The translations under genes and the position numbers were made by a program. A DNA stretch of 64,000 nucleotides. Source: Anolis carolinensis. Taxonomy: Eukaryota. Within the stretch, counting starts at the first letter, position 1, and every line of letters starts with the position of its first letter. Shown piece by piece: positions 1,089 through 26,006 of the stretch. A model generated the notes under the pieces. It had not been told where the DNA came from, made no database searches, and saw only the letters and a program-made list of their open reading frames with translations. The stretch covers positions 157,183,036 to 157,247,035 of the forward strand of contig NC_085842.1 of NCBI RefSeq assembly GCF_035594765.1, in the 5' to 3' direction.

Positions 1089-1350
1089 TAGATTTACTCT
1101 CTATATATCTTGTTTTGCATACATTACAAGGCAATAACCACGATCCCCCTTCTAGAGCATGAAGTCAATGAAGTACTGAAGCATGTTTTTTTTTTCTTTT
1201 GGGAAAGTCTTTACCCATTTGTTGATTCTTCATTTTGGGGAGAGGCAGTTAATGGCCACCTTTGAGGCCCGTTCCACACAGCTGTATAAAATCCCACATT
1301 CTCTGCTTTGAACTGTGTTAAATGGTAGTGTGGACTCAGATAACCCAGTT

Positions 1351-2068
1351 TGTTCCGTCCCCCAGGACGATGGTTTGCCTTACTTATTGGTCGTTTGTTT
1401 GTTTTCCCTCCTTTGCATTTTGTTTCAGCCTCTGGCTGCAAAAGCCCAGGAAAGGTGGCTTGAAGTCTGCAAGAGCTGGCTGCAGTTTTCTTTGCAATGA
1501 TTGGTCAAAGAGTACAACATCTTAGGACCGCCCTTTTTACCAGGGTCTAGTCTCCATTTTAGAGTTTCATTCTGGCTATAGTCTTCCAACGTGCTGGAGC
1601 TGTGCAAGGCTAACTGGGACAAATCATCCTCAAAACCAGGCCAATCTAAGCCTATCCAAATTAGATAAGTATTGAATTATACTGATCTGGAATAGGAAAT
1701 CTAGTTAGAGGAGCAGGGTTATTCCATCGCTTCTAGAACTAATCTTTGCTGTAAAGATAGGGAAGGAAAGAGTTTCTCCTTCTAATATAGACAGCGTGAT
1801 TAGGGTATAGTGGTTTTATAATCACCTTTGCCTTCTGGAACCAGGGATAATTCTGCAACTAAAACCTATGGAAATTTGTTTCATTTTCTGCAACTTTAAG
1901 ATCTGTGCCAGGTTTACAACCTTGTATGAATAAACATCCTTTTTTGAAGTTCTCCAGACTCAGTCGTTCAATATTTTAGGACAGCTTATAGGGATTTGCA
2001 GTTCGCCCGGATAAAGGACGGCACGTTTCAGCTTTATAGTTTTTTTTTATTGTCTGGCGGACGGCACA
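1351..2068 (+). repeat. 5' LTR (718 bp)
   Basis: Matches 9399-10116 with no difference seen; imperfect terminal inverted repeat TGTTCCGTCCCCCAG / CTGGCGGACGGCACA; AATAAA at 1929-1934. Confidence 0.97.
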
Positions 2069-2082
2069 GTTTTGAGGACGAT
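2069..2082 (+). promoter_or_regulatory. Non-canonical primer-binding site complementary to LTR 1623-1636
   Basis: GTTTTGAGGACGAT directly follows the LTR, lacks TGG, and pairs 13/14 with ATCATCCTCAAAAC. Confidence 0.6.
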
Positions 2083-2421
2083 CAGCGGTTTTCCGCTTGA
2101 GCTAGCCTGCACGGCCATAGAGACTTTGATTTTGTTGGTCTGTTGCAGTGAAGCTTGCTGCCATTCCTTCAGCCTCTGCAGTATCCTGCTCTTCAGCTGC
2201 GGCTGTTTCTGCAATTGCACGGCTGTGCAAAACCCAGCAATCTACCCCGAGCTCCTTCGGCGGCAGGTATCGAGCCGCGGAGCTCCAGCAGCAGTCTTTG
2301 GGCTCACACAGAGGTGGTGAGTCCAGAAGCACCAGGCCGGGACCCAGATAAGCCTGGCAACTCCAAAAGAAAGTTCTGGCTGAGTCTTCACAGTGGCTAG
2401 GATCTCGGCCGGGACAGTCGC

Positions 2422-2593
2422 CCGGCGGTGGTGACCTGCCTCATGGTCCGGCGGTGGTGACCTGCCTCATCATCCTGCGGTGGTGACCTGCCTCATTGAC
2501 CTGCGGCGGTGACCTGTCTCATCATCCTGCGGTGGTGACCTGCCTCATTGACCTGCGGTGGTGACCTGTCTCATCGTCCTGCGGTGGTGACCT
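2422..2593 (+). repeat. 26-bp tandem array (~6.6 copies) in the BEL 5' leader
   Basis: Units start at 2422, 2448, 2474, 2500, 2526, 2552, 2578; core CCKGCGGYGGTGACCTGYCTCAT. Confidence 0.95.
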
Positions 2594-2973
2594 CCCTTCA
2601 CAGCGGGGAGGAGGCGTCTCTTCTCTCCTCCTCTCCAAAGCCAGCCTCGGTGCTCCTTCGGCGGCAGGCCTCGAGCCGCGGAGCACAAGGTGCTTGAAAA
2701 TTTGGCGAAGTCACCATTTTGGCAGTTTACGTCACTCGGGCAAGGGAGGTATCAAGTGGCAAGTTGCTGTCAGTTGGCATTTTGCAGCTTGCCTACCAAA
2801 GTTTGGCGCCAAAGGTCACAATCTTTGTAAAGTATAGTTACTTAGTGATATATATTGCTATGGTTAAGTGCTGTGAATTGTATTATATATTGAATTTGCT
2901 TTTATTGTAAATTTACTTGCAGGTATATTGCATTTGCCTTTGTTGTAAATTTACTTGCTATTAAGAATACATA

Positions 2974-5900
2974 ATGTCTATGCAATTTCAAGATGATGCA
3001 GATGGTATACCTCCTTCTGAGGCTGAAAGTAGGAATGAAAGGCCCCAAAGGATAAAGCACCCTTCAGCCAAGATGCTAGCCCATCTAATAGATGAAAAGG
3101 AGCTCCTCCATGTGAGGTTAGGTTCGGCATGGGAGCGAATTGTAACATTAATGGACAGAATTGAGAGCTTGGGTATTACAAGGGTGCCATCCATATTACA
3201 GACAGACCTTGAAGAGACCTTCGGTATTTGGAGGGGTTTGGTGTCTAAGATAGTCCAGGTCCTCGAGCGCATTAACGCCAAGGATTCAGAGTTAGAAATA
3301 GTGAGTGTCTTAGCTGACACTAATGAGAAAGAAAATAAGGTGAGGGCAATTCTAGATGCCTTGGAATTTAGTTCTCCATCTGTTAATCTAAGGTCTGAGC
3401 CAAAAGGAAATCAGTCTTCCTTATGCAGCCATGAGACCAATCTTTTAAAATCACCTGCTGTGGCACTTAGTCTTAAGTCCAACCGCTCTAGCCAGGTATC
3501 TAAACTAAGGGAGTGTGCATCATCTAAACATAGCCACTCTAGCAAGTCTTCTGCTGCTGGGAGTGCCATCTCTTCCCTAGCTGCCTTGCACATTAAGGAG
3601 GCTGCACGTCTAGAGCTAAAGAGCAAGGTAGCGGGGGCGGAGGCTGATGCTAAGGCAGCTGATCTCACCCTTCCCTTTAAAGAAGAAGAGCAACGACTGC
3701 AAATAGAACAGGCCCGTAGACAAAGCGAAATGCAAATGGAACAGGCCCAAAGGCAAGGTGAAATAGAAATGCTTAGAATAAGGATGGATGCTACTGCCAA
3801 AAAGGTAAGGGCTGAGACTTTGGCCAAGGCCCTAATTGAGCCACTCACAGAAGAAAATGTAAGTCAGTTGCCGAAGCAGGACCCTTCTTCCAAGGTGCTT
3901 GTGCATCTTAATAGCTTAAACAGCCAGTTTTCGGATGAGGAACAGGAAGACTTCTCTCCTTACCCAGAGCAGGGCCCCAAAGTCACTTTTGAGTTTCCTG
4001 CAGAGCAGAGCGTCATAGCGGGGAGCTCACCCTTGCCCGAGCTATCTGTGCCTCCTGCTAAATCCCTAGGTCAGTCAATCAGGGCCTCAAGGCCAAGTGC
4101 TAGTTGGCCCTTACAGACAGCTGCACAGGGAGCCACCGATTCGTCAGTGGTCGATGTCATCCCTCCAAGAGGCCAAAGGTTGACGCAAGGTGCACGGTGG
4201 GAGTCCACTCCACAACAGCAAACTCCTCAATTGTTCCCTTCGACGCCAGAGTCCCAGCTTGTCTCCATCATCAGAAGCCCCAGAAGAGATCTTAAGGACA
4301 AGGGTGTCGAAAAGTTTTCGGACAAGCCTGAGGAATTTCTTCTCTGGAAGGCCACCTTCCAGAGAGCAATCAGAGACTTAAAGTTATTGCCTGAGGAAGA
4401 ACTGACTCTTCTGGCTGCATGGTTGGGCCCAGCCTCATCCTCACAAGTTAAGAAGATCTACGCAGCCCACGTAGCCGATCCCGACAAAGCCCTGGAAAAG
4501 GCCTGGGCCAGGTTGCAGCAGAGGTATGGGGCCAGCACAGAGATTGAAGCATCTCTTATGGACAAGCTCCAAAGGTTCCCAGCTTTGAAACTCAAAGACT
4601 TCAAACTCTTGTGGGACCTCAGCGATCTCCTTACGGAATTAGAGTCGGCCAAGGAGAATCCAGAACTGCCCGGTTTGAAGTGCCTCGATCAGCACCTGTC
4701 CCAGAGGCAGATCTTGACCAAGCTGCCCTTCACTTTGCAAGAACGCTGGGGACAGGAGGTCTTCAACTACAAGGAGGCCCACTCCCAGGCATACCCTCCA
4801 TTTTCTCATTTGGTCCAGTTCATCACCAGGGCGGCCAGAGAAAGGAATGATCCGCAGACGGGCCTCCCCACCTTATACCAAGGGACCCAGCCAGAGAAGG
4901 CACCTAAAGTGGAGAAAAAACCATCCAGAGAGGCCAAAAGACCGGTTAGTGTTAAGGCTGTTGAAACTCAGCACAGGGCCAACGAATCCAAGTCAGAGGT
5001 GAAGGAGGTGCTCTGCCCCATTCACCAAAAGCCTCACAGTTTGGCCAACTGCCGGGAATTTGGCAAGAAGCCTTATAAAGAAAGACAACAGATTGTTCAG
5101 AAGCTGGGCATATGTTTTAGGTGCTGTGGAGCTACTCCTCACTTTGCATCCAACTGCAAAGAGGACGTCAAATGCGCAAGGTGTAACAGCCTTAAGCATT
5201 GCACCGCGATGCACAACTCTGACGCTGTCTCCCACGCCAAAGGGGACACGTTTTCTAAAAAAGGGTCATCTACTGAAGCCACCAACACGCAGGCCGCGTC
5301 ACGGATGCAGGAGGATGCTCCATCGGTCGCCTGCACTAAACTATGCTCTGACGCGCACCAGCTTAGAGTCTGCCATCCCATCTGCCTAGCAGATGTATAT
5401 CCAGCCAGAAGACCTTGGCTTAAAAAGAGACTTTACGTGGCTTTGGATTCACAAAGCGACGCCTCCCTGGCGACTCCAGAGTTTTTCCAACTGTTTGACA
5501 TAAAAACCCAGACGGTCGACTACACCATGTCCACCTGTGTAGGGAAGAAGAAGTTGCAGGGTCGCATAGCATCCGGCTTTGTTGTCTCCTCTTGTGACCA
5601 GAAGAGACTGTTCGAGTTACCAGACCTCATTGAGTGTTCCTCTATTCCCCGGAACAAAAGGCAGATTGTCACCAGAGAAGTCGTGGAAGCCCATCCTCAC
5701 TTGCGAAAGCTGAAGAACGCCTTACCTGCTTTCCGTCCAGATGTGGACATTGCCCTTCTGCTTGGTGCGGACTGTCCGAACTTGTTCTATGTGAACGACC
5801 AAGTTAAGGGACCTCCAGGGGCGCCCATTGCTCAGCTGCTACCACTAGGCTGGACAGTTACAGGCCCGGTGTGCATAAATAGGATGCACCCTCCATCGTC

Positions 5901-8900
5901 GGTGGGCACTCGTCAAGCGCACGTGCTTCAAGGCAGTCGCCCCACACTAATGCATAGCTGTTTGAGTCATATCTCGGTCTATTGTCAGGGGATAACACCA
6001 GAGTATTCTTCCATCTTTGAAGTCTCCGAAAGGGATGAAACTACAGCGCTTTCCAAAGATGAACAGAGGTTTTTAGAGATCATGAACTCTCAAGTTTCCC
6101 GGAGTCCCGAGGGAAATTGGATAGCCCCTCTGCCTTTTAAAGCAGAAAAACCCACTTTGCCAAACAACAGGCATGTGGCAGAAAATAGACTCTGGTCACT
6201 GAAGAAGAAGATGCAGAAAGACCCCAAGGTAAAGGAGCAAATCGTTGGCTTTATGGAAGACATGTTCCAAAGTAACTACGCCGAGGTCTCTGATCAAAGT
6301 GAGGTCAATGAAGAAAACTGGTTCCTGCCTTTCCATAAAGTCACGCATCCCCAAAAGCCTAACAAGGTCCGAATTGTATTCGATGCCAGTGCCGCATGCC
6401 AAGGCATTTCTCTTAATAATGTTTTGCTAAAGGGACCAGATCTTTTAAACAGTTTGCTCGGAGTCATCTTGAGATTTAGAGAGAAAGAGTTTGCTGTTAT
6501 TGCAGACATCCACAAGATGTTTTACGCCTTTTTAGTTCGTCCTGATCATCGCAGGTACCTCAAGTTTTTGTGGTACGCGGACACTCAAAATTTGTGTGAC
6601 GTTCGGGTTTTTCAGATGCGCGTACATGTCTTTGGAAATACCCCGTCTCCAGCCGTTGCAAACTACTGCCTCAAAAGAACCGCAGATGAGTTTGGGCACC
6701 AGTTCAGTCCAGAAGTCGCCAGCATAGTTAACCACAACTTCTACGTGGATGATCTTCTGGTTTCGTTTGACTCCGTTCATCAAGCCATCCAAATAGTGCA
6801 TGAGCTGCAGGCTTTGTTAAAAGGTGCCAACATTCGCCTGCACAAACTATTATCCAACAGCAGACAAATCTTGCAAGCCTTTCCCTCCGAAGACTTAGCG
6901 GAAAGCAATGTTCATGAGTTATTCAAAGGGTTAAGCTCCCAGTCTAGTTTAGGACTTCTCTGGGATGTAAAATCGGACCATCTTTCGTTAAGAGCATCTA
7001 AATTTCAGTTTGTGAACACTAAGAGACAGATGCTTTCCGCCATCAATGGGATATTTGATCCCTTAGGCATAGCTGCTCCTGTCCTGATCACTGCTAAACT
7101 TCTGTTCAGACAGGTGATCCAAGAAAAAATAGGATGGGATCAAGAGCTGTCTCAATCAATAAAAACGGCTTGGTCAAACTGGACTGCCCAAGCTGAAGGC
7201 CTGGAAACCATCGCAGTTCCCAGACAATTTGCGCCCTGTAAGGTAATGATAGAACCCACCACAGAACTTCACATCTTCTGTGACGCATCTGAGCGAGCTA
7301 TAGCAGCTGTGGCATACATGCGACAAAAGGACAGAGATTTTTGTCACGCAGGATTCATCATGGCAAAGGCTAAAATAGCTCCTATGGGAACTTCAATACC
7401 CCGGCTGGAATTGTGTGCAGCAGTTCTTGCTGTCCAGCTCTGGCGCATCATCCAGCAAGAGATAGGAGACTTGTTTCAAGATGTCCATTTCCACACGGAC
7501 AGTACAGTTGTGCTTGGTTACATCAACAACACAACCAAAAGATTCAAGGTGTATGTGGCTAATAGAATCAACAACATTCTATCCAGTTCTACGCCTAGCC
7601 AGTGGCACCACGTCGCCACCAGCAACAACCCAGCTGACATCGCTTCCAGAGGAGCTTCAACTCAACGAGTGTTAAGTTCAAGTTGGCTGACAGGCCCCAG
7701 ATGCTTGACCGAAGTCAATTTTCCATCAGCCTTTTCTCCCACCGATATTACAGAATTGCCCGAGTCCGTTCCAGAGGTGAAAGTTTGCAAGATGACCACA
7801 GAAATCAAGATGGGCCAAAGATCTTGCCTGGAACCACACCGTTTTGAATGTTTTTCGGAGTGGCACAGTCTTCTTAGAGCAGTTGCTAGGCTTATACATC
7901 GTTTAGCTTGCAAAGATAGTGAGCCTTTACAGGTCCAGGATATGATAAAGGCTAAGAGCGTCATATTCAAGTCAGTACAGAGATCTGCTTTCAAGCAGGA
8001 AATAGCTAGGCTAGAGCAAGGGCTCAACATCCCTAATCAAAGTCTTCTAAATGAGTTAAACCCATTTCTAGACAAGGAGGGTATTTTGAGAGTTGGAGGA
8101 AGGTTAGCCAAAGCTAAACTCAAGGCGTGCATAAAAAACCCCATCATCATACCCCCTAATAGTCACACTGCATTGCTGCTCGTTCGGCATCACCATGAAA
8201 GGATCCATCATCAGGGTAGAACTCTAACTGAGACAGCCCTTAGAAATGAAGGTCTGTGGGTAGTTAATGCCAAAAGGTTGGTCAACAGTTGTATTTTCAA
8301 ATGTGTTAAATGCAGGCGCCTTAGGCGAAACTGTCAAAGTCAGTTGATGGCAGAACTACCTCAGGATAGGACTTTGACAGACCCACCCTTTTCCCATGTG
8401 GGAATCGATGTGTTTGGTCCTTGGGAGGTTGTCACTAGGAAAACCAGGGGTGGTGTTGTAAATAACAAGAGGTGGGCAGTTTTGTTTACTTGTTTAGTAA
8501 TACGAGCTGTCCATATAGAAGTCATAGAAGGGATGGACACTTCATCATTTTTAAACGCATTAAAAAGGTTCATAGCCCTCAGAGGGCCAATTAAGTCAAT
8601 TCGGTCGGACTGTGGCACCAATTTTGTAGGTGCGACCAAAGAACTCAATTGTGTGTCTAGGTTTGGGAGAGACCCAAAGGTTCAGAACTTTACGAATACT
8701 GAACAAATTATGTGGACTTTCAATGTTCCTCACGCCTCCCACATGGGTGGTGTTTGGGAGAGGATGATTGGTATTAGTCGCAAAATCCTTAATGCCATGC
8801 TTTTGAGTCATAGGTCATTGACGCATGATGTTTTGGTGACACTTATGGCGGAAGTTACCGCAATTATCAACAACCGGCCGCTGGTTCCCCTTACCAGTGA

Positions 8901-9309
8901 CCCTGAGAACTTACAACCACTGACTCCTGCACTTATTTTGACACAAAAGGTGCCAGGATGGAAGGACATCATGTTGCCAGTTCCGGACGGAACTCACCGT
9001 GCCCTGTGGAAACAGGTGCAGTCCTTGGCCAACCACTTTTGGAAAAGGTGGAAAGCTGAGTACTTAAGCCAGCTTCAAGCTAGAAGAATCTGGCAAAGCC
9101 CACAGGACAACATTGAGGTTAACAACGTTGTGTTGTTAAAGGACAAAGACTTGCCCCGCCATGCATGGCCCATGGGCATTGTATTAAAGACCTTTCCTTG
9201 CCCGGATGGTAAGGTCAGGAAAGTTCAATTAAAGACTTGCAACAGAGACAAAGTGTCCATTTTGGACAGACCAATTAGTGACCTCGTGTTGCTTATTGGA
9301 GATGTTTAA
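2974..9309 (+). CDS. BEL/Pao Gag-Pol polyprotein (2111 aa)
   Basis: Three Cys/His knuckles (CPIHQKPHSLANC, CFRCCGATPHFASNC, CARCNSLKHCTAMH); aspartic protease LDSQS; RT VFDAS/GPDLLN/YVDD; Pao RNase H FCDAS/TDS/NPADIASRG; integrase HHCC plus IDVFGP/SDCGTNF/WERMI; no stops or frameshifts. Confidence 0.97.
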   Translation: MSMQFQDDADGIPPSEAESRNERPQRIKHPSAKMLAHLIDEKELLHVRLGSAWERIVTLMDRIESLGITRVPSILQTDLEETFGIWRGLVSKIVQVLERINAKDSELEIVSVLADTNEKENKVRAILDALEFSSPSVNLRSEPKGNQSSLCSHETNLLKSPAVALSLKSNRSSQVSKLRECASSKHSHSSKSSAAGSAISSLAALHIKEAARLELKSKVAGAEADAKAADLTLPFKEEEQRLQIEQARRQSEMQMEQAQRQGEIEMLRIRMDATAKKVRAETLAKALIEPLTEENVSQLPKQDPSSKVLVHLNSLNSQFSDEEQEDFSPYPEQGPKVTFEFPAEQSVIAGSSPLPELSVPPAKSLGQSIRASRPSASWPLQTAAQGATDSSVVDVIPPRGQRLTQGARWESTPQQQTPQLFPSTPESQLVSIIRSPRRDLKDKGVEKFSDKPEEFLLWKATFQRAIRDLKLLPEEELTLLAAWLGPASSSQVKKIYAAHVADPDKALEKAWARLQQRYGASTEIEASLMDKLQRFPALKLKDFKLLWDLSDLLTELESAKENPELPGLKCLDQHLSQRQILTKLPFTLQERWGQEVFNYKEAHSQAYPPFSHLVQFITRAARERNDPQTGLPTLYQGTQPEKAPKVEKKPSREAKRPVSVKAVETQHRANESKSEVKEVLCPIHQKPHSLANCREFGKKPYKERQQIVQKLGICFRCCGATPHFASNCKEDVKCARCNSLKHCTAMHNSDAVSHAKGDTFSKKGSSTEATNTQAASRMQEDAPSVACTKLCSDAHQLRVCHPICLADVYPARRPWLKKRLYVALDSQSDASLATPEFFQLFDIKTQTVDYTMSTCVGKKKLQGRIASGFVVSSCDQKRLFELPDLIECSSIPRNKRQIVTREVVEAHPHLRKLKNALPAFRPDVDIALLLGADCPNLFYVNDQVKGPPGAPIAQLLPLGWTVTGPVCINRMHPPSSVGTRQAHVLQGSRPTLMHSCLSHISVYCQGITPEYSSIFEVSERDETTALSKDEQRFLEIMNSQVSRSPEGNWIAPLPFKAEKPTLPNNRHVAENRLWSLKKKMQKDPKVKEQIVGFMEDMFQSNYAEVSDQSEVNEENWFLPFHKVTHPQKPNKVRIVFDASAACQGISLNNVLLKGPDLLNSLLGVILRFREKEFAVIADIHKMFYAFLVRPDHRRYLKFLWYADTQNLCDVRVFQMRVHVFGNTPSPAVANYCLKRTADEFGHQFSPEVASIVNHNFYVDDLLVSFDSVHQAIQIVHELQALLKGANIRLHKLLSNSRQILQAFPSEDLAESNVHELFKGLSSQSSLGLLWDVKSDHLSLRASKFQFVNTKRQMLSAINGIFDPLGIAAPVLITAKLLFRQVIQEKIGWDQELSQSIKTAWSNWTAQAEGLETIAVPRQFAPCKVMIEPTTELHIFCDASERAIAAVAYMRQKDRDFCHAGFIMAKAKIAPMGTSIPRLELCAAVLAVQLWRIIQQEIGDLFQDVHFHTDSTVVLGYINNTTKRFKVYVANRINNILSSSTPSQWHHVATSNNPADIASRGASTQRVLSSSWLTGPRCLTEVNFPSAFSPTDITELPESVPEVKVCKMTTEIKMGQRSCLEPHRFECFSEWHSLLRAVARLIHRLACKDSEPLQVQDMIKAKSVIFKSVQRSAFKQEIARLEQGLNIPNQSLLNELNPFLDKEGILRVGGRLAKAKLKACIKNPIIIPPNSHTALLLVRHHHERIHHQGRTLTETALRNEGLWVVNAKRLVNSCIFKCVKCRRLRRNCQSQLMAELPQDRTLTDPPFSHVGIDVFGPWEVVTRKTRGGVVNNKRWAVLFTCLVIRAVHIEVIEGMDTSSFLNALKRFIALRGPIKSIRSDCGTNFVGATKELNCVSRFGRDPKVQNFTNTEQIMWTFNVPHASHMGGVWERMIGISRKILNAMLLSHRSLTHDVLVTLMAEVTAIINNRPLVPLTSDPENLQPLTPALILTQKVPGWKDIMLPVPDGTHRALWKQVQSLANHFWKRWKAEYLSQLQARRIWQSPQDNIEVNNVVLLKDKDLPRHAWPMGIVLKTFPCPDGKVRKVQLKTCNRDKVSILDRPISDLVLLIGDV

Positions 9310-9388
9310 AGTTCTAGTGTTTGTATTGTCATATGTGCAAAGGTGTTTGTATGTTTTTGAGTGGTAAATTCCCACATCCTGGGAATTT

Positions 9389-9398
9389 AAGCGGGGAG
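9389..9398 (+). promoter_or_regulatory. Polypurine tract
   Basis: AAGCGGGGAG immediately before the TG of the 3' LTR. Confidence 0.8.
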
Positions 9399-10116
9399 TG
9401 TTCCGTCCCCCAGGACGATGGTTTGCCTTACTTATTGGTCGTTTGTTTGTTTTCCCTCCTTTGCATTTTGTTTCAGCCTCTGGCTGCAAAAGCCCAGGAA
9501 AGGTGGCTTGAAGTCTGCAAGAGCTGGCTGCAGTTTTCTTTGCAATGATTGGTCAAAGAGTACAACATCTTAGGACCGCCCTTTTTACCAGGGTCTAGTC
9601 TCCATTTTAGAGTTTCATTCTGGCTATAGTCTTCCAACGTGCTGGAGCTGTGCAAGGCTAACTGGGACAAATCATCCTCAAAACCAGGCCAATCTAAGCC
9701 TATCCAAATTAGATAAGTATTGAATTATACTGATCTGGAATAGGAAATCTAGTTAGAGGAGCAGGGTTATTCCATCGCTTCTAGAACTAATCTTTGCTGT
9801 AAAGATAGGGAAGGAAAGAGTTTCTCCTTCTAATATAGACAGCGTGATTAGGGTATAGTGGTTTTATAATCACCTTTGCCTTCTGGAACCAGGGATAATT
9901 CTGCAACTAAAACCTATGGAAATTTGTTTCATTTTCTGCAACTTTAAGATCTGTGCCAGGTTTACAACCTTGTATGAATAAACATCCTTTTTTGAAGTTC
10001 TCCAGACTCAGTCGTTCAATATTTTAGGACAGCTTATAGGGATTTGCAGTTCGCCCGGATAAAGGACGGCACGTTTCAGCTTTATAGTTTTTTTTTATTG
10101 TCTGGCGGACGGCACA
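9399..10116 (+). repeat. 3' LTR (718 bp)
   Basis: Direct repeat of 1351-2068, followed by TSD CAGTT. Confidence 0.97.
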
Positions 10117-10896
10117 CAGTTCAAAGCAGATCTTGTGGATTATCTGCCTTGATATTCTGGGTTATATGGCTGTGTGGAAGGGCCCTGAGAATCTGATGAA
10201 AGCTATGAAAAAAGAAGCATCTGAACAGATTTTATATATAATTTTATTGTATTTGAATTTGGTTTCTTTCACATACAGGCAGTTCTTGAGTTACAAACAT
10301 TTACAATTCACATACAGGCAGTTCTTGAGTTACAAATACTCGACTTACAAAGTTAAGAACAGGGGTGAGACTACAGGAAGTGAAAGAAATCTACCCCTCA
10401 GAAGAGAAATTCACTCGTGGAAGAGTTATCATGGGGAAAAGGTGTCTCCACTGAAGCTTTACCAGCAATCCTTGTTTCCACAACAAGCCATTTTTTTCAA
10501 AATCCAATTCTCACAGGGACAGAAAATGAGGTGGAATCTTCTGAGAAGATACACAGACCACAAAAGAAACTCCGCAACACACTTAAAAGATGGCCCTGTT
10601 CTTGTGCAAACACAACCAACAGTATACGTCAATCCTGCTGAAAAGAAAATTTCAGTTTAAAAGCTGCTGCTATTTAGTTTGAATAAGAAATTGATATTGT
10701 GGCATTCACATGCATCCTATCAATGTCATTTGACTTTTCATTTGGGTGGCACAATGCTTCGAATTGTGACTCACAAAGTTATAGAGGAGCAAACCCAGAG
10801 CTCTTGATTTTCCAAAGGAAATAAACTTTGTGTCTAGGAGCCTCCAAATTCCTCCATCTCCTTGAGTTAAATTCGTTTTGCATCATTTCCTTTGTC

Positions 10897-16230: not shown

Positions 16231-18501
16231 ATAAAATAATCAGAGACTGAACCTGAGTTAGGACCTTCAAGACCTCTTTCTTCCCAGAAAAGGGGATGGT
16301 GGCAAAATATTGGCCAATTCATTCCCTTCTTGTTTCCTTGAACTTCAAAACCATCGATGAACTGATCCTTATATTTTCCCAGCAGGAGGCAGCAAACCCC
16401 AGGATTTGTTTAGCTTTACTGAAGAGAGACACCTACTTGAATCCATTGGGATGTTAAACAGCGCTTGCTTGGCTGTGACTCACCTAATATATGCCTGCGT
16501 GCTTGTATAAACTTTTATTCATGGCAAGTGTGCTGCTTGTGTCCTCCCTCACACACAGTCACGTACAGGCTAGGGCAGATATTGATTTGACAATGTTCCA
16601 ATTAGGCCTAGATCTGGCACTTTATCGTACTGAATTTCTTATTCTCACTAACCACTAATATTTTTGGGAGTTTCTTTAGAATAAGAAACTGCTCTAGGAT
16701 ACATAAAGCGCTTTGAGTCCCCTTTGGGGTGATAAAGCAGGCAATAATGATGATGATGTCCATAGAAGGCCTCTCCTGTCCCAAATCCAGGGGGACTGGC
16801 CAGGGCAACATGTAGTTACAGCACTTTGTGCTCCTAGATCAGGGGCTGGAGCATTGAGGCCATCAAAATATTGTTGAACTGTATCTCCCATCAGATCTAG
16901 CCAATGGTGAGGAAGGCCCCATGATCCCATGCTTTACTAGGCTAAGGAGAAAAATATTACCTTGTATCTGATTTGAGGATATAATATTTCAAATGTTTCA
17001 AAGCCATGGCCAAAATAACACAAGGCAGCATTTAAAAAATATTATTTCTGTGTTTCACTCTAGTTTCATTGAGAACAGTCACCTGTACACCAGCAAAAAA
17101 AAAGTACAGGGATAAAACAACTGACAGATTCTCATGGCATTTGTGTTTGCTGGTTTATAGGCATGGATATAAATTTGTCTGTTTGCATATACTAGCAAAT
17201 AGGCATGAATCCACAAGCTGGTATGGTGTAATAGTTCTGAGTGTTATATGAAGACTCCCGGAGACCAAGGTTGGGATCCCTGCTCAGCCCTGGGAACCCT
17301 CATGGGAAGTCTCATTATCAAAGGAAAGCAATGGAAAGCTCACTCTGAACAGTCTTGCAAATATCCTATGATAAGGCTACTAAATGTTGGGGATAAAGAC
17401 ATTCCAAATACAAATGTTGAGGTAAACAGCATTATTTACATAGAAATATAATCCTAGTATGGAGGACTGTGGGCATGTCTTTGACCTGAGGCTCAAATAC
17501 TATATGTTCATGGGCAACTTCAAGGCCTCTCTCTGCTTTTCCAAGGCTATGCAAACCTTCAAACTAAAGATAACATCAAATATCTGTCCATCCTAGTAAT
17601 TTTGTAATAGAACATTTGGTTCTTGTTGGCCTTGATAGCTCCTGCTTACCAATTCCAACAGAGAAGGTGACTGGAGATGCTAGGCAGGTTGCCTCAGGTG
17701 AGCGATGCTGGCAGCCAGCGGCAGGGCATTGGAGAGCAGTGTGCCAAGCCATCTATCCCACCATCCCCAAAAAATCACCTGCTAGCTTCAGACGTGGTGG
17801 AAAGTGCTCCCCTCACAAGGGTTGATACTGCAGTCAGCTTTCATGCACAGAATGGAAATAGGCTCGATTTCATTCACCGGCCAAATGTCTTGAGTTCGGT
17901 TCTGGCGGTGGGGGAACAATATTGTAAAAATGCTTTCACCCATTCTCTTGCTGACTCACCACATCCACACCAGCCACAAGGGGAAAATGATCCTGCATAG
18001 AAGTAGAGTGCCAAGTGCCAAACCCACTAAACACATGCTAATAGCTAGAGTCTTAAAGAGGGTCATCATATTATCAGCAATAGCAAACCCAGTTCTTTGG
18101 ACACCTGACCTATTATAATCATCCATACACAAGAGGGGATTGTTAGCATGTTAGCAATATTCATGGGAGAACTTCATGGTTGGCAGAAGTATAGAAAGTC
18201 TTTAAATCCTAAATTGGGCCAGGGAGGAGGGATCCTAACATAGCAAGCTTAGTGAACACAAATTAAGGGATGTCAGCACGAAGTGACATTCTAGAAAAAG
18301 AGCATGACTTGATTATTGAAATATGATTACTTCACTCTGCTGTTTTTGTAAGAAGTCCAATTTATTACATTTATATCCCATCTTTCTCCTGTGGAACTCT
18401 TGAGTAACACACACAGTTCTCGGGGAGCCTCCACTCCCAAATACTGGCCAGATCCAGACACTAAGTTTCATCAAGCTTGCTGCAATCATGTGCCTCTAAG
18501 A

Positions 18502-18571
<70 letters not shown>
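18502..18571. repeat. (ATCT)n microsatellite
   Basis: Directly visible. Confidence 0.95.
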
Positions 18572-18572
<1 letters not shown>

Positions 18573-21500
18573 CCTGGGACTGAGAAAAACTAATATACAG
18601 TTTATACAGTCACTCTTTTTAAGACTAGGCAAATTATTAGGATTTTAAGATGCTTTGCAACAAGGAGTGGGCTTCTTTCGTGATGACGCTATGACAACTA
18701 TTCTTAGGCATTTGATGAATTTTGAAGGGGTCCATCCATGCAAGGAGAGTTTTAAGTGTGACAGCCAGGAAAGGAGAACTTTTAGGCAAGGGATCTAAAA
18801 GCTTTAAAAAAGTACAGCAAAGGCAATTTTCTTTTTAAAAGACTGGGATAGGAAACTTTGGACTCTCCAAATGTTTTAGGATACAACCACACCTTGTAAC
18901 TATTTGATCTTCTGGCTGTAGCCTCTAGAAATGAAGAGTCAAAACATCGGGAGAGCAAAAGATTCCCCACTTTTTGTAGCTTTGAAGACATGTGTCCTAT
19001 GGTACAAGCACAAGCTCAAAGAAAGGATGTTCTTGAACAGAGGACTTGTGGAGTCTACTTCCCAATTATTCCTGGTCTCAAGGCTCCTAACAGGAAAAGA
19101 ACAGAAGCAATCTAACACAAATATATGGCAATAGGGTTCAGTTGGAAATTGAGAAATTTAAGGTTTGCATTTAGTTTTCCTTATGAAACTTTAAGCTACT
19201 TTACAACACAAATGTGAATCATACATAGGCTATAATGGTTATTAACATTACAAATGCCTCTTTTTCTGCATGAACAGAGCAATGAAGGGGGCTTCAAAGT
19301 AAATACCGATGATGTTTTGTTTTTGGATCCAAAAACAGAAGTAATCAAAACTTCTATACAGGACGACAAAGGTTCATGCTCTCATGAATCCTCTTATAAG
19401 TTAAAACAATGGCTATAGTGTGTGGCAATGGATGGGATTAGCAAAGGCTTGAGAGGATCATAGAAAAGGAAAAGGCAATGGCAAACTTCTCCATTTCCTC
19501 ATGTTGTCTCTAATGGTTTCACTCCAAACCATGAATCAGGTTGCCAAAAAAAACAAACAAAACCTGATTGTTTTATACTTCAGTAATTCTCAGGCTGGTC
19601 TCCCTAAATGGCAAAAATCTACCAAAATAACTTATCATTACAAATATCTTTGCTGTAATGTGCCAACAGTAGGAAGTATGTTGTGTGAATTCAAAAGGAC
19701 TCCCAATATCATGCTTTTCTATGAGAAGGTGGAGTCTCCTTTTCTGAGTTTTTCTAGCTGAAATCCTGTATTGAGCAGGGGATTGGACTGTGATGCTCCT
19801 TCCAACTCTATGATCCTGTGAGACTGAGTGACAAACCACATAGAGTGCTCACATGTGCTCCAGAATTCCCTGCAATGCATAAGGCTGCTTCAGCAGACAC
19901 CTCACATAGCTGCTGTAGCATACCATGTTTTACACACAAAAGTTTACAAATTTGATCCGTTATAGTAGAGCAATGGAAAAGAGCTCTTTCTCACCAAGAC
20001 CATGGAAAACCACTGCTTAGCTAAAACAGACAAGAGTAGGCTAAATGGACAGGCAGTTTGAACTGGCATATAGCAGATTCCTGTGAAAGTTGGCCATGGT
20101 ACCCGAAGGGCCTGGCAACCTTTTCCCATGCTTGTGCTACAGTCGCTGGGCGGGGCAGGAAGGGTACCTAAAAGCATAGCCTTGTACAACTACAGACTGA
20201 ATAGAAAAGCCACCTTCCCTTTTCAGTCACTCTCAATAAACGTCTTCTCTCACAAGTATCAAAAAAGTGAGACAAGGCACTTATGTGAACAAGGGGTTTT
20301 GGGGGTGTGGGAAGCATTTTTTAGGCCCTGGTGCCTTCTCTTCTTATTTCAGAGCATGGAGCGGAACGGAAAGCCCAATCCAATGTCATCAGGGTGGGCA
20401 GGACCCCTTTCTTGGATTAGCAACTAATGGGATTTAGCTGCTCATCCAATATCTTCCCTTCAATACAGGAAGGGAGGGGGCTAAATGCCACTTTGGATCA
20501 AAGACGCCCCCTCCTCAGAGAGAAGTGCAGCTCAGTTAAGCTGTTTCTAATTAAAGTCAGTGCCTACATGTCCATCACCAGTCCTGGGCTAGCAAGAGCA
20601 ACCTGAACCAAGAGAAAGGCCATGTATGTTAAGGGGAAACTGGCAAGGGGTGGAGGCGCAAACGGAGACATTGAGGAGGGAAAGTCTTTTTGTAAAGAAA
20701 TGAGTTATCAGTAAACACAGAGACACTATTCAGGAGGTGGAAGAAAAAGCACAAAATCTCTTTCTTTGGTAAGGTGTTGAAATGCAGAATCTCACTCCCA
20801 GACCCTGAATGCAGCCTAAACCCTCGCGAGCAATCAAAAATCCCTTTTCAACCTCGGTTCAGCACTGGGGAGATATATAGACGCAATTTTAAAGGGCTAT
20901 TTGGTTCTCCTGAATTACTGTGTATATGTGAGTGCACAATGTTCCTTCACACAGTAATTCTTGAACCCTGTGTCCTGATGACAGGAATGAATGAAACAGT
21001 CTTGAGAGACACTTAACACGTAGCATATTTCTCAACGTCCGCAAAACACGAGACTGGAGCCAGCATCTACATAAAACAAGTTTAATATCCAATGGGGGTG
21101 CACAGAAGTCATGGTGCATCCAACTGTTCAGGGGGGCCAAGAAAAAACACATATAGGGAGCCATGGCCCAGAGAATGAACAAAACCAGAAAGAAAGGGGA
21201 AAGGTAAATCACTTTACACCAAGCAAAGGGAGTTGAAGATTAATTTAGAGGGTGGGAGAGGGAAAGGGGAGGCAGGAAGAGAGAGAGAGAAGTCAATACA
21301 TATTTGCCAGAATAGGGAGAGGGGAACACACAGTACCAACACTGTCCAAAGGCAGGGAGTGTCCAGAAAGTTACATGCATTGAACTGGGTCTGATCCTAA
21401 TACAATCATTACCCCCCCCCCCCAAATAATGAAAAGGGGGGAGGAAAAAGACACCTCCACTTTCCCCAACATGGAAAATAAACCTTAAAGAGCCAGGGTT

Positions 21501-22810
21501 TTATCTCAGGGCAGGGGAAGAAGGGGGAGAGTCACCTGTCTTAAGGGATAACACCACATATATAGGCAGCAATGAAATTCTGCCCTTGGGAAGCTTCCAG
21601 AAGGAAGGCAAAGCAGGTTGGTGGAACTATTTAGCAGCCAGGGTGCTGCCATGTCCATCTTGTGACAGGAAAGAATAAGGAAGGAGTTTTGTACAATAGC
21701 TGTTCACAGCATTGGTCCCAAACCTTCTCAGCAGCTCATGCCAATGCCCAATAAATGCTGGTCCAATTCTATGGGGGAATGGAAAGAGCCCAGGAGGCTG
21801 AGGAGAGGCAAACTACGGAGGGCCGCAGGTGCCATATGGTCAAAAAGGTTGGAATGCAAGAGTTTCGGTTTATTGGCAGCATCAAGAGTTGCTATCCACA
21901 TGCGTCACTAATGAAATTGTTAACAGGCAATGGATGGGGAAGCAGGAAGTTTCGATAAAGAATGCTCCATACTGCTGCAATGTCAGCGGCAATACCAGCA
22001 GGGGGCACTGCTGAACACAAACCCAAGGCAAGAAAGAAATGTGCAATATTTTATTGGGGAGGGAGGTTGTAATTAGCTGGAACTCACTGCATCCCTCCTA
22101 CTCCAACATGCTACCATCAAGAAGTAATGGGCCTTTTCCCCATCTGCAGCAGCTCGATTTCTGAGACCCTCCCTTCTTGCATTAACCATCTCTGCCTCCA
22201 CAGCATATGACCCCCAGCTTTGCCTTTATTAACCCTGGATTCCTCCCTCCTTTCCACTCTGCACTAACAGCACAAGAAAGAAAGCAAGAAAAGCAGCTGC
22301 CACTGAATTCTGGTCCCCTCCAGTTAAAGAGCGTGCCAAGTTTCACATACCACCAAGAAAATACAAACTGACCAACAAAAATATAGAAAGGAAAGGGAAA
22401 TAAGGGGAAAAGAAAACAAGGGGGGAAAAAGAAAGGCCACAGAATCGGCGTCCAACCCCCACTTGCCCCAACCCCTCCCACCACACCCATATATTTTATT
22501 ATCTCTATATATATATTTATCACACACGCACGCGCACACACAGAGACCGTGCAAAAAAATTCCTGGCAGAGCCAGGGCATGAGAAAATAAGAGAAAAAAC
22601 AAGAGAGGTTGAGAGAGAAAAAGGAAACCAAAATTTCACCCCACCCCACCCGTCCCCACCCCCACAGCAACCGGTGCCGCCAGAGAGGAAAAGCAAACCC
22701 AACAGGGAAAGGAGAGGGAGGGGAGGGCTGGGGGGGAGCGTAGGAAGGAGAGGGGAGACCAACCCAAACTGGAACCCACAGCCAGGAGCTGAGCCCCACC
22801 TCTCCTGCAC

Positions 22811-22972
22811 TCATTTCTTGTTCTTCAGCTGGTTGGCCAGCCAATCCAAGCCCTCGTAGAGGCCGTCCCCACTCGTGGCGCAGGTGGCCTGGATGTACCA
22901 GTTGCGGTGGCGCAGTGAGTGTAGACCCAGCTTGTCTGTGATTTCTGCAGCATTCATGGCATTAGGGAGGTC
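22811..22972 (-). CDS. ARF3: ADP-ribosylation factor 3, last coding exon
   Basis: [53 protein letters not shown]; acceptor TTTTCCAG; C-terminus diagnostic for ARF3 rather than ARF1. Confidence 0.97.
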
Positions 22973-25274
22973 CTGGAAAAGAGATGAGAAAACAAGAAGG
23001 AATGAGAAGGAGGACAGGGTTGCACAATGGTCAGGAAATGGGGGACTGCACTGGCTAGCTATGGGACCCTCGAGGTTCATCCTGCTCCATACCCAATTTT
23101 GAAATCTGTAATCTTTTCTAAAAAGTAGAATGTTTTGCCCAAAAGGTTCCACATACCTCTGGAGAGTGAAAATATTGCCTCTTTTTTGACAGCCCGCAGT
23201 TTAGACTTTTTGAAAAACCTCCTGCTCACTTTTTTAAGTTCTGAGGGTTAAAATATGACTCAGGGGACATACTTGCCTTATCCCAAGACTTACTGCTATT
23301 TCAAGGTATTCAAAAATAAATGAAAAAAGAGAAAGCGCTCTTTATTAAAAACAAGCGCACTTTCAGTAATTGCTTCTTCCTTTGCAGTCACTGAAGCATT
23401 TGTAGATGATACTATACGCATGGCCATGCTGGCCAAAGCTTAGAGAAATTTTGTTCTGGGTTACAGCTCTCATTATTGCCCATGTTTCCAGTTTATTGAT
23501 TTCCTTTACAAAAAAGGTAACCTTTCGAAGGCCTGATCCTGCCAGACTCATCATGTCCACGAGGCACCTTTGGCAGAAAGAAGTCTAGTTTTTGCTGATG
23601 ATGTTGGATCAGTTTGTTGCTAGTTTATTTGGTCATTCAAGAAAGAATATCTCTCCTGACCCATCTCAGCCTCTTTGTCAGGTCTTTCCATAGTAGTCAA
23701 TGCCTACAATAGAATGGGCTTTATATATTTTGGGTAAATAAATGTAATTTGTACTCCAAGGAAGCTTGAGGGTATTTTCTGATTTAAATCATTTGTTTTG
23801 CTCCTTCTATTTATAGGAAAACACAGTACATAGAAATCATACTAACTGAAGGCCACATGATACTCCACTACCACCACACTTTGATTGTATAAATACTATC
23901 AAATATTAACAGTTAAATAATAATTATTACATTTATAAATGCACTATTACATTCATATCCTACTTTCCTCCAATGAGCTCAATATCTATTTATTCAAATA
24001 GCTCACTACTACCTCCCAGTCTTATCTTTGAAACAAGCTGATGAGGTAGACATGGGAAACTGAGTGAAATAGATCCAAGGTCATCCAGCAGGTTTAAATA
24101 GCTCAGTGGACGCTTGGACCTGGATCTTTCATATCCTAGCTCCTAGACTGTAGGAACTACACCACATTGGCTTCCATCCAATCTGAGATTTCATGTCAGG
24201 ATTCTCCATACACTACTACATTGACAAGGAAGCACTACTTGCCAAAGCAATTGTGACAAAACACCTACAATACGGATTAGTTGACCAATTAGTTACATAG
24301 TGCAGTTTACTGAATAATGCAATTATCTAATTATAATAATAACAACAACTTTATTTATAGACTGCCCTCTCTCCCCGAGGGGACTCAGTGGTTTACAAGG
24401 CAAACATTCAATGCCATAGTCAACAAAAATGCACAAATCAGAACAATACAAAATAGCATCAATAAACTTATATTAACAAGAGAAAATAGAAATAAAATGA
24501 TCTACCTACTCCTGTCACATTTTGCCACTGTTGATACAACAGTAGTTATTATTATTGCCATATTTATTTATATCTAAGTTTCCTCCAAATTCAAAATGCA
24601 AAGTAGCTTATGAGAGTTAAAATATAAATACCTGCAACCATCACCTAAAGGATAAGATGACACGGAGGTCACTTATGATGCCCTCCTGTTTAGAACTTGC
24701 TTCCCTGACAAACTTGCCTGGCACTTATAAGTGAAATATTTGCAGTATAGAGCAAATACTGTTTTATCCTCCCCAGTTTTTAAAGAACTTTAAAATTACA
24801 CCTGATTTTTAAAAGGTTGTGCTATTCATCATATTATCAATATAATTCTGCCCTTAAGTTGCTATGAAAACTGTAGCTGGGAGGGTAGTATAGAAATGCT
24901 TCAAGAAAATACTATTTTAACAATTCGTTTAGAAATTGTTCCCATGTTCTAAAATTTAATTTGTTTCCGCTAGTCCAGTGGGGGCAATAAGACACAGACA
25001 GAATACTCATATCTGGCTTGTGATTTTTTATATTTATCCTTTTATTGAACTACACAGATCATTACAATAATTAATTTTTACTCAGTTCTCCACCCAGTAC
25101 CAATCTATGTGTTAAATAGAACATCCAGAGCCCTGAATACAAAATTCTGGAATACAAAAGTCTGTTCACCTTATACATTGTTGTTGTTATTATTATTGCT
25201 GCCCCACTTTATCTCCCCAAAGGGGACTCAAAGCGGCATGACAAAAAACCATTGGTATCCAATTTAAAATATAA

Positions 25275-26006
25275 CTAGCTGTACCTTGCCACGCATTGCT
25301 GTGGCCCAGTCTGGTTCAATAAAAAAACTCAGAAATTCAGAAAAGAGTTCTTTCTCCCACCCTGAATCTTCCACAGATTTATAAAGAGAAGCCTCCCAGA
25401 GGATGGTAAAACATGTGGGTGTCCCCTGGGTAACATTCTTGCTGACAGCCAGTTCTCTCAGATCAGAAGTGGCAGGGCTATTTGATGCTAACACCTCCCA
25501 ACAAAGGATTCCCCCAGGCAGGAAGTAGCCAGGGTTTGAAGCAGCAAAGCTATGTAATGCTAATCAAGTTGGCCAATTGGAACACTCACATTTGCCTGTA
25601 GGAGAAAAGAGTTCTTTCTCCCACCCTGGACCTTTCACAGATATATAAAGAGAAGCCTCCCACAGAATGGTAAAACATCCTGGTGTCCCCTGAGTAACAT
25701 CCTTGCTGACTTCCAATTGTCTCACACTAGAACCGGCTTGCAGTTTCTGAAGTCGCTCCTGACACCCTTTCCATAGTTAGGCCTCAGAGCCTTGGACTTG
25801 CGTAATTCCTCGTGAATGGTGAGGAGGCGGACCTAGCCTTCCCTTGCAGCCTCACCCACACCAGTTGCTTGCAGTTTTTGAGAGTAGGCTTAAAACGCAC
25901 GGCAGTTCAAATGCTATATTGTATCCAAATTTCATAGCATTCAGTGGAGTTATTTGGGAGATATGAGGTCCCTCACTGATGGACATTACATTTTTATTTA
26001 TATAGA
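25275..26006 (-). mobile_element. Non-autonomous Helitron in ARF3 intron 4
   Basis: Minus strand 5' TC (26006) and 3' CTAG (25275), subterminal hairpin GCCACGCATTGCTGTGGC (25288-25305), inserted at A|T. Confidence 0.75.

Follow-up and report, generated by a model that had tools for sequence, protein, structure and literature searches.

LTR complementarity at the primer binding site suggests self-priming in a BEL/Pao retrotransposon of Anolis carolinensis and its relatives

Self-priming of reverse transcription has been described for the Tf1/sushi group of Ty3/gypsy chromoviruses, to which Tf1 and Tf2 of Schizosaccharomyces pombe belong, and has been predicted for the plant Tcn1 and TAR lineages (PMC6317226). 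The Tf1-type mechanism is summarised in PMC5341516 and PMC6317226, and a computational criterion for it has been put forward, namely a complement to the LTR of at least 10 bp that starts 0-5 bp after the LTR (PMC6317226). In Tf2, the choice of start site decides whether a transcript can be reverse transcribed (PMC5341516). Priming in BEL/Pao elements has hardly been studied. The ICTV profile of the Belpaoviridae describes priming by a host tRNA, with an 18-nt primer binding site (PBS) complementary to tRNA-Arg or tRNA-Gly at the 3' terminus (PMC8742986), and priming is not discussed in the BEL/Pao survey or in the Sinbad paper. Our search, which covered literature outside subscription journals (an earlier description may exist in the latter), found no report linking self-priming to BEL/Pao.

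We examined a BEL/Pao element of Anolis carolinensis and related elements from other animals. Our analysis makes it rather likely that the Anolis element, like Tf1 and Tf2, primes its minus-strand DNA with part of its own genomic RNA. Judging from sequence comparison, the branch of BEL/Pao that includes elements of ticks, frogs, fish and molluscs probably primes with a piece of its own RNA as well, since the same pairing between LTR and PBS, with compensating changes, is found in the related elements.

The Anolis element and its primer binding site

By LTR comparison, ORF content and Pfam domains, positions 1351-10116 of the window (the whole 64,000-nucleotide stretch of Anolis carolinensis DNA that was analysed) hold a complete BEL/Pao LTR retrotransposon (Table 1). 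The element has the TG..CA LTR ends, a target site duplication (TSD) within the 4-6 bp range and the polypurine tract that are used to recognise BEL/Pao. Its single polyprotein comprises reverse transcriptase, the Pao-type protease/RNase H region, integrase and a C-terminal DUF5641, which is likewise the BEL/Pao arrangement; the Pfam matches were strongest for Peptidase_A17 (1.1e-43) and DUF5641 (1.7e-25) and weaker for RVT_1, rve and DUF1759. Near-identical proteins are annotated in Anolis carolinensis, and the closest homologues outside Anolis are BEL polyproteins of fish, frogs, ticks and oyster, at 45-48% identity. We found no gene-product record for the window ORF itself. With identical LTRs and an intact ORF, the element appears to be young and intact, and it looks active.

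The flanks of the element (960-1350 and 10117-10190) contain a short host repeat that has inverted symmetry within it. One copy of this repeat was interrupted by the insertion, and the empty target site can be seen in an uninterrupted paralogue a few hundred bases upstream, at about 960-1090 (the part around 1003-1088). An Rfam search of positions 1300-3000 returned only a sub-threshold snoRNA-like match, and a search of viral contigs returned one partial match, which was irrelevant.

Table 1. Positions in the window of the features of the Anolis BEL/Pao element
Feature	Positions	Strand	Remarks
TSD, 5' copy (CAGTT)	1346..1350	+	same 5-mer at 10117-10121
5' LTR (TGT...ACA)	1351..2068	+	718 bp; 100% identical to 9399-10116
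Candidate start region	1620..1627	+	candidate +1 at A1626 (after C1625) or A1621 (after C1620), placed by analogy only
Putative self-primer segment	1623..1636	+	core 1627/1628-1636 complementary to the PBS; no variation among the 8 LTRs of 4 Anolis copies; pair probability about 1 in the model RNA
Vestigial homologue of the start/primer motif of relatives	1907..1917	+	CAG plus T-rich hexamer ending in AC; aligns with 10 relatives
Polyadenylation signal AATAAA	1929..1934	+	read directly; relative position as in relatives
Predicted U5 stem-loop	2001..2062	+	just upstream of the PBS; MFE pairs 2001-2014/2050-2062; possible U5-IR analogue
PBS without TGG	2069..2082	+	bases 1-9 invariant in the Anolis family
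Small hairpin 3' of the PBS	2084..2097	+	pair probability 0.5-1.0; kept in 4 Anolis copies, loop of 4 or 5 T
26-nt tandem repeat in the leader	2418..2597	+	6.9 copies; units with 7-8-mers resembling the 5' part of the primer segment
Intact gag-pol ORF	2974..9309	+	2111 aa; DUF1759, RVT_1, Peptidase_A17, rve, DUF5641
Polypurine tract ending in GGGGAG	9390..9398	+	adjoins the 3' LTR; motif common to all relatives
3' LTR	9399..10116	+	718 bp; second copy of the primer segment at 9671-9684
TSD, 3' copy (CAGTT)	10117..10121	+	5 bp; pairs with 1346-1350

The TSD and the identical LTR pair confirm that the 5' LTR ends at 2068, the boundary on which the original prediction depended. The sequence that follows behaves much as had been predicted: the first 14 nt after the LTR pair at 13 of 14 positions with the putative self-primer segment (10 contiguous pairs, an A-C mismatch between 1626 and 2079, and 3 more pairs), the pairing stops exactly at the LTR edge with C1636 opposite the first base after the LTR, and no TGG occurs in the first 60 nt after the LTR. 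In model RNA folds, the PBS-LTR helix was part of the minimum free energy structure, with a probability of 0.7-0.99, for Anolis and seven relatives. The hairpin that had been proposed to follow the PBS was borne out by the fold as a predicted structure, with a pair probability of about 1. A second helix that had been proposed between 1637-1645 and 2049-2056 fared differently, with a pair probability of 0 in the fold, which predicts instead the U5 hairpin listed in Table 1 and three pairs between 1640-1642 and 2063-2065. The sequence motifs cited around the primer segment (ATTGG, CCGCCC, TATAG and AATAAA) are all present; the promoter motifs among them have no counterpart in the relatives.

The pairing of the PBS with the primer segment is the top inverted repeat in the LTR plus leader. 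Other inverted repeats of 10-14 nt are present within the same 1.6 kb, so that the significance of this one rests on its position. For a run of at least 10 nt from the first base after the LTR, the analytic expectation is about 7e-4 for 718 nt; among 843 control 16-mers from the same element, 0.24% (n = 2) reached a 10-nt run and none reached 13/14. We put the probability that an LTR-internal complement falls at the PBS position by chance at about 1e-3 at most. The 3' half of the PBS is also able to pair with the tandem repeat in the leader (e.g. 2075-2085 with 2570-2580), which may be a competing structure or chance; alternate units of this repeat carry 7-8-mers that are identical to the 5' part of the primer segment, in both CG and CA forms.

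Four Anolis copies were compared: the window copy, L002 (99% identity) and L010 and L011 (about 95%). The LTR primer segment showed zero variation across all eight LTRs. The PBS is likewise invariant over bases 1-9 and constant again over bases 12-14, with differences in all of the copies at bases 10-11, and we therefore take the conserved Anolis helix to be 9-10 bp. When the copies were measured against the published computational criterion (PMC6317226), the complement started at offset 0, with 10 contiguous pairs (13/14 overall) in the window copy, 14/14 in L002 and only 9 contiguous pairs (12/14 overall) in L010 and L011. PBS positions 11-12 read CG in two Anolis copies and TG in L002, and the perfect match of L002 may reflect CpG-to-TpG decay rather than the ancestral state.

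PBS positions 10-11 (2078-2079 in the window, with the equivalent bases of L002, L010 and L011) form a mutational hot spot at the would-be primer 5' end, which could have arisen through copying of the primer end into DNA or through CpG decay. Among family contigs from four public runs, none of the variant sites listed (17 further sites were unlisted) falls into either of two LTR blocks, 1566-1681 and 1871-1951, and the LTR sequence flanking these blocks carries a variant every 10-30 nt. The first block contains the primer segment and the second the ancestral motif with AATAAA.

PBS and LTR complements in related elements

The related lineages examined (n = 20) comprised eight genome loci with LTR ends verified by 5- or 6-bp TSDs (from Danio, Xenopus, Hyperolius, Eleutherodactylus, Acipenser, Ixodes, Dermacentor and Saccostrea) and 12 metagenome contigs. 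TGG after the LTR was absent in all 20 of these lineages, and likewise in all ten genome loci whose LTR ends were fixed independently by TSDs. The LTRs end in CA or TA, and in every element the PBS opens immediately behind these bases with GT; in most this is followed by a short A-rich stretch, after which the sequences diverge.

In 18 of the 20 lineages, the element's own LTR holds an exact complement of 6-13 nt that starts from the first PBS base. It is 13 nt long in Ixodes, 11 nt in Dermacentor (13/14 overall), 9 nt in Saccostrea and 6-7 nt in frogs, fish and several metagenome contigs; across the metagenome relatives, exact runs are 5-8 nt, with 8 nt in four lineages. One metagenome lineage (L089) has a 13-bp helix made up of 12 Watson-Crick pairs and one G-U pair. 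The fit between PBS and LTR is poor in L019 and L021, and in 11 of 19 relatives the helix consists of just 5-7 A/U-rich pairs, with a duplex dG of -1.6 to -8 kcal/mol and a pair probability below 0.3.

These pairs covary. At PBS position 3, 15 lineages have A-T and four have G-C; at position 6, 17 have A-T and one has T-A; position 7 shows four Watson-Crick pair types (G-C, A-T, C-G and T-A); the longer helices differ entirely in sequence between lineages. We also carried out a permutation analysis in which every PBS was given its best site in each lineage's 180-nt window and the assignments were then shuffled. The true PBS-LTR pairs scored 147, compared to 111.9 +/- 5.2 for shuffled pairs, and none of 50,000 permutations reached 147, a result to be read with the caveat that the lineages are related and that about eight of them supply most of the signal. 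Complementarity between PBS and LTR in related BEL elements, which the original prediction had named as a check, is thus found there, with different sequences and compensatory changes.

The complements of the relatives share a sequence context. They sit 65-150 nt upstream of the LTR end and usually begin 2 nt after a pyrimidine-A step, in the motif YAG: the complement starts right after YAG in 12 of 19 lineages (L019 being unanchored) and includes the G of YAG in three more, all from frogs. A polyadenylation signal (AATAAA, ATTAAA or a variant) follows 3-61 nt downstream of the complement, except in Acipenser, where none was found. A short R region would be expected to start in this way, with a T-rich tract, a pyrimidine-A-G step and a poly(A) signal close by. 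By analogy with known initiator elements, we infer that the YAG motif of the relatives is an initiator, i.e. the site at which the RNA would start. The sharp boundary of the complement at YAG is what would be expected if the bases upstream of it are not in the RNA. The T-rich tract and YAG, within the 12 nt before the primer segments in L004-L009 and L012-L032, also resemble a splice acceptor.

A more distant BEL clade, at 38-40% identity, also lacks TGG (L036 998-1015, L038 108-125 and L039 1113-1130). A TTCGAA palindrome in the PBS region of this clade is found a second time in U5, some 70 nt further upstream, and an exact LTR complement was not found at offsets -2 to +2. The Xenopus tropicalis relative (L003) lies inside a tandem tRNA gene cluster (4000-9000 and 17000-25600) with 28 tRNA calls (Ala, Phe, Met, Leu, Gly and Glu), and its LTR end contains a 37-nt internal duplication of the terminal motif.

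Candidate start site and alternative explanations

In a quick tree, the Anolis element fell on a long branch as sister to the 18 remaining in-clade rows (SH-aLRT 93), and it departs from them in where its pairing segment lies. The Anolis LTR retains a vestigial homologue of the relatives' start/primer motif, followed by AATAAA and the shared U5 motif, and this homologue has no complementarity to the element's own PBS. The actual pairing segment is located 280 nt upstream of the ancestral-type motif and 432 nt from the LTR end, without the T-rich YAG context seen in relatives. Two unpaired bases followed by pairing, as in the relatives, can loosely be fitted at C1625-A1626 or at C1620-A1621, by analogy. 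A start at 1626 would imply an unusually long R of about 320 nt, with the poly(A) signal 300 nt from the cap. Contig depth in public runs falls at the LTR end rather than at the poly(A) site, a pattern expected of DNA that includes solo LTRs, and is uninformative on the start.

We propose the following series of events. Genomic RNA would start at about A1626 (or A1621), and its first 11-16 nt would fold back onto the PBS. The element's RNase H would then cut after C1636, leaving a 3' end from which the last LTR base would be copied, followed by U5 and R, where R would begin at the cut and end at the poly(A) site after 1934. If the primer were copied into plus-strand DNA, as in Tf1, the PBS could track the primer, which would explain how a new pair of primer and PBS arose 280 nt upstream of the ancestral one. 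A Tf1-like mechanism of this kind was the central proposal of the original prediction; the comparative evidence strengthens it for the BEL/Pao lineage, and two parts of it, the precise start site and the second helix, went unsupported. We consider the chances evenly balanced for the more specific proposal that the whole branch (lizard, frogs, fish, ticks, oyster and marine metagenome contigs) is primed by its own capped RNA 5' end (about 8-16 nt, pairing from +3) and that in Anolis the primer and the PBS were replaced jointly, the start shifting 280 nt upstream.

The pairing could instead be selected with transcription starting near 1908, at the ancestral site, and with the segment inside U3. 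In that case the PBS would pair with the 3' U3 copy of the segment, on the same or a co-packaged RNA, and that copy would either supply a primer from the 3' end or make a long-range contact for circularisation, dimerisation or packaging, with some other primer in use. Retention of the ancestral YAG motif and AATAAA at 1907-1934 is in keeping with this arrangement, as are the variant-free block 1871-1951 among family contigs, which suggests constraint there too, and the absence of the clade's start context at the 1623 site. However, in every relative the complement is found at the start-like motif itself and not upstream of it, cleavage within the 3' U3 would separate R from the template, and the RNA 5' end would be left without a PBS complement, so that another primer would still be needed. 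We regard this arrangement, the main rival, as unlikely.

Somewhat less probable in our estimation is that the PBS is the target of some host RNA other than those compared (half of a tRNA, a fragment from within one, a mitochondrial tRNA or a different small RNA, for instance), with the LTR match coincidental or secondary. Half-tRNA priming does exist in copia-type elements (PMC6317226), and T-rich anticodon loops resemble the PBS complements of some relatives over 7 nt. The tRNA-Glu(UUC) gene of the Xenopus cluster (L003 5863-5934) is such a case, its anticodon loop holding a 7-nt complement to the PBS start of the relatives that begin with GTGAAAA; this is probably a chance match in a T-rich loop, and it is the sole host-RNA lead that we saw. 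A shared host RNA is difficult to reconcile with the PBSs of the clade, which diverge after 6-7 nt and follow their own LTRs, or with an LTR match whose chance probability is about 1e-3. The comparison with host tRNAs that the original prediction had called for gave no match of at least 10/12 for any of seven vertebrate tRNA species, taken from the Xenopus cluster in L003, and the PBS has no TGG; tRNA genes were absent from the window and from the Anolis loci. That the complementarity is a functionless accident seems to us very improbable: although the same 1.6 kb holds further inverted repeats of 10-14 nt and a run of 10 nt was reached by two control 16-mers, the match lies flush with the LTR edge, is conserved across two Anolis subfamilies that are about 95% identical, and recurs as an arrangement in the sister clade.

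Priming by the element's own RNA, if true, would change the textbook account of BEL/Pao and would be of clear interest to retroelement specialists. Annotation pipelines that seek tRNA-type PBSs would be expected to miss or mis-score such elements. Self-priming would then be present in all three superfamilies of LTR retrotransposons, and would be either ancient or repeatedly evolved across them, and the Anolis element would illustrate how a PBS comes to follow its primer through the copying of that primer into DNA. The young, active-looking Anolis family would also offer a vertebrate system in which the choice of start site could govern reverse transcription, as it does in Tf2 (PMC5341516).

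Comparison with known priming systems

The Anolis element resembles canonical BEL/Pao elements in gene content, TGT...ACA LTRs, 5-bp TSD and polypurine tract. It differs from them, together with the 20 relatives, in that the 18-nt tRNA-type PBS of the family profile (PMC8742986) is absent.

In its priming region, the closer likeness is to the Tf1/sushi group. Tf1 and Tf2 likewise have no tRNA PBS, and the sequence directly after their 5' LTR complements a segment inside the LTR that is thought to be the RNA 5' end. The helix of 9-14 bp in the Anolis element is close to the 11 nt of Tf1, and a stem-loop next to the PBS is a Tf1-type feature that in the Anolis element is predicted only. The differences are also considerable. 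The Anolis element belongs to another superfamily, with a Pao-type protease and DUF5641 and no chromodomain; the RNAs of the BEL clade appear to leave their first two bases (AG) unpaired, and many members have only 6-8 pairs. Cleavage and start site are proposals for the BEL elements, unlike in Tf1, and the distance between segment and LTR end in Anolis sets it further apart.

The plant Tcn1 and TAR lineages, which belong to other superfamilies, were assigned to self-priming by the same computational criterion; in contrast to the BEL case, that prediction cites no covariation or start-motif analysis (PMC6317226). Copia-type half-tRNA priming shares with the elements described here a PBS without TGG and a primer 3' end that would be made by cleavage. 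There, a host tRNA half is common to the whole family, whereas in the BEL elements the PBS follows the element's own LTR.
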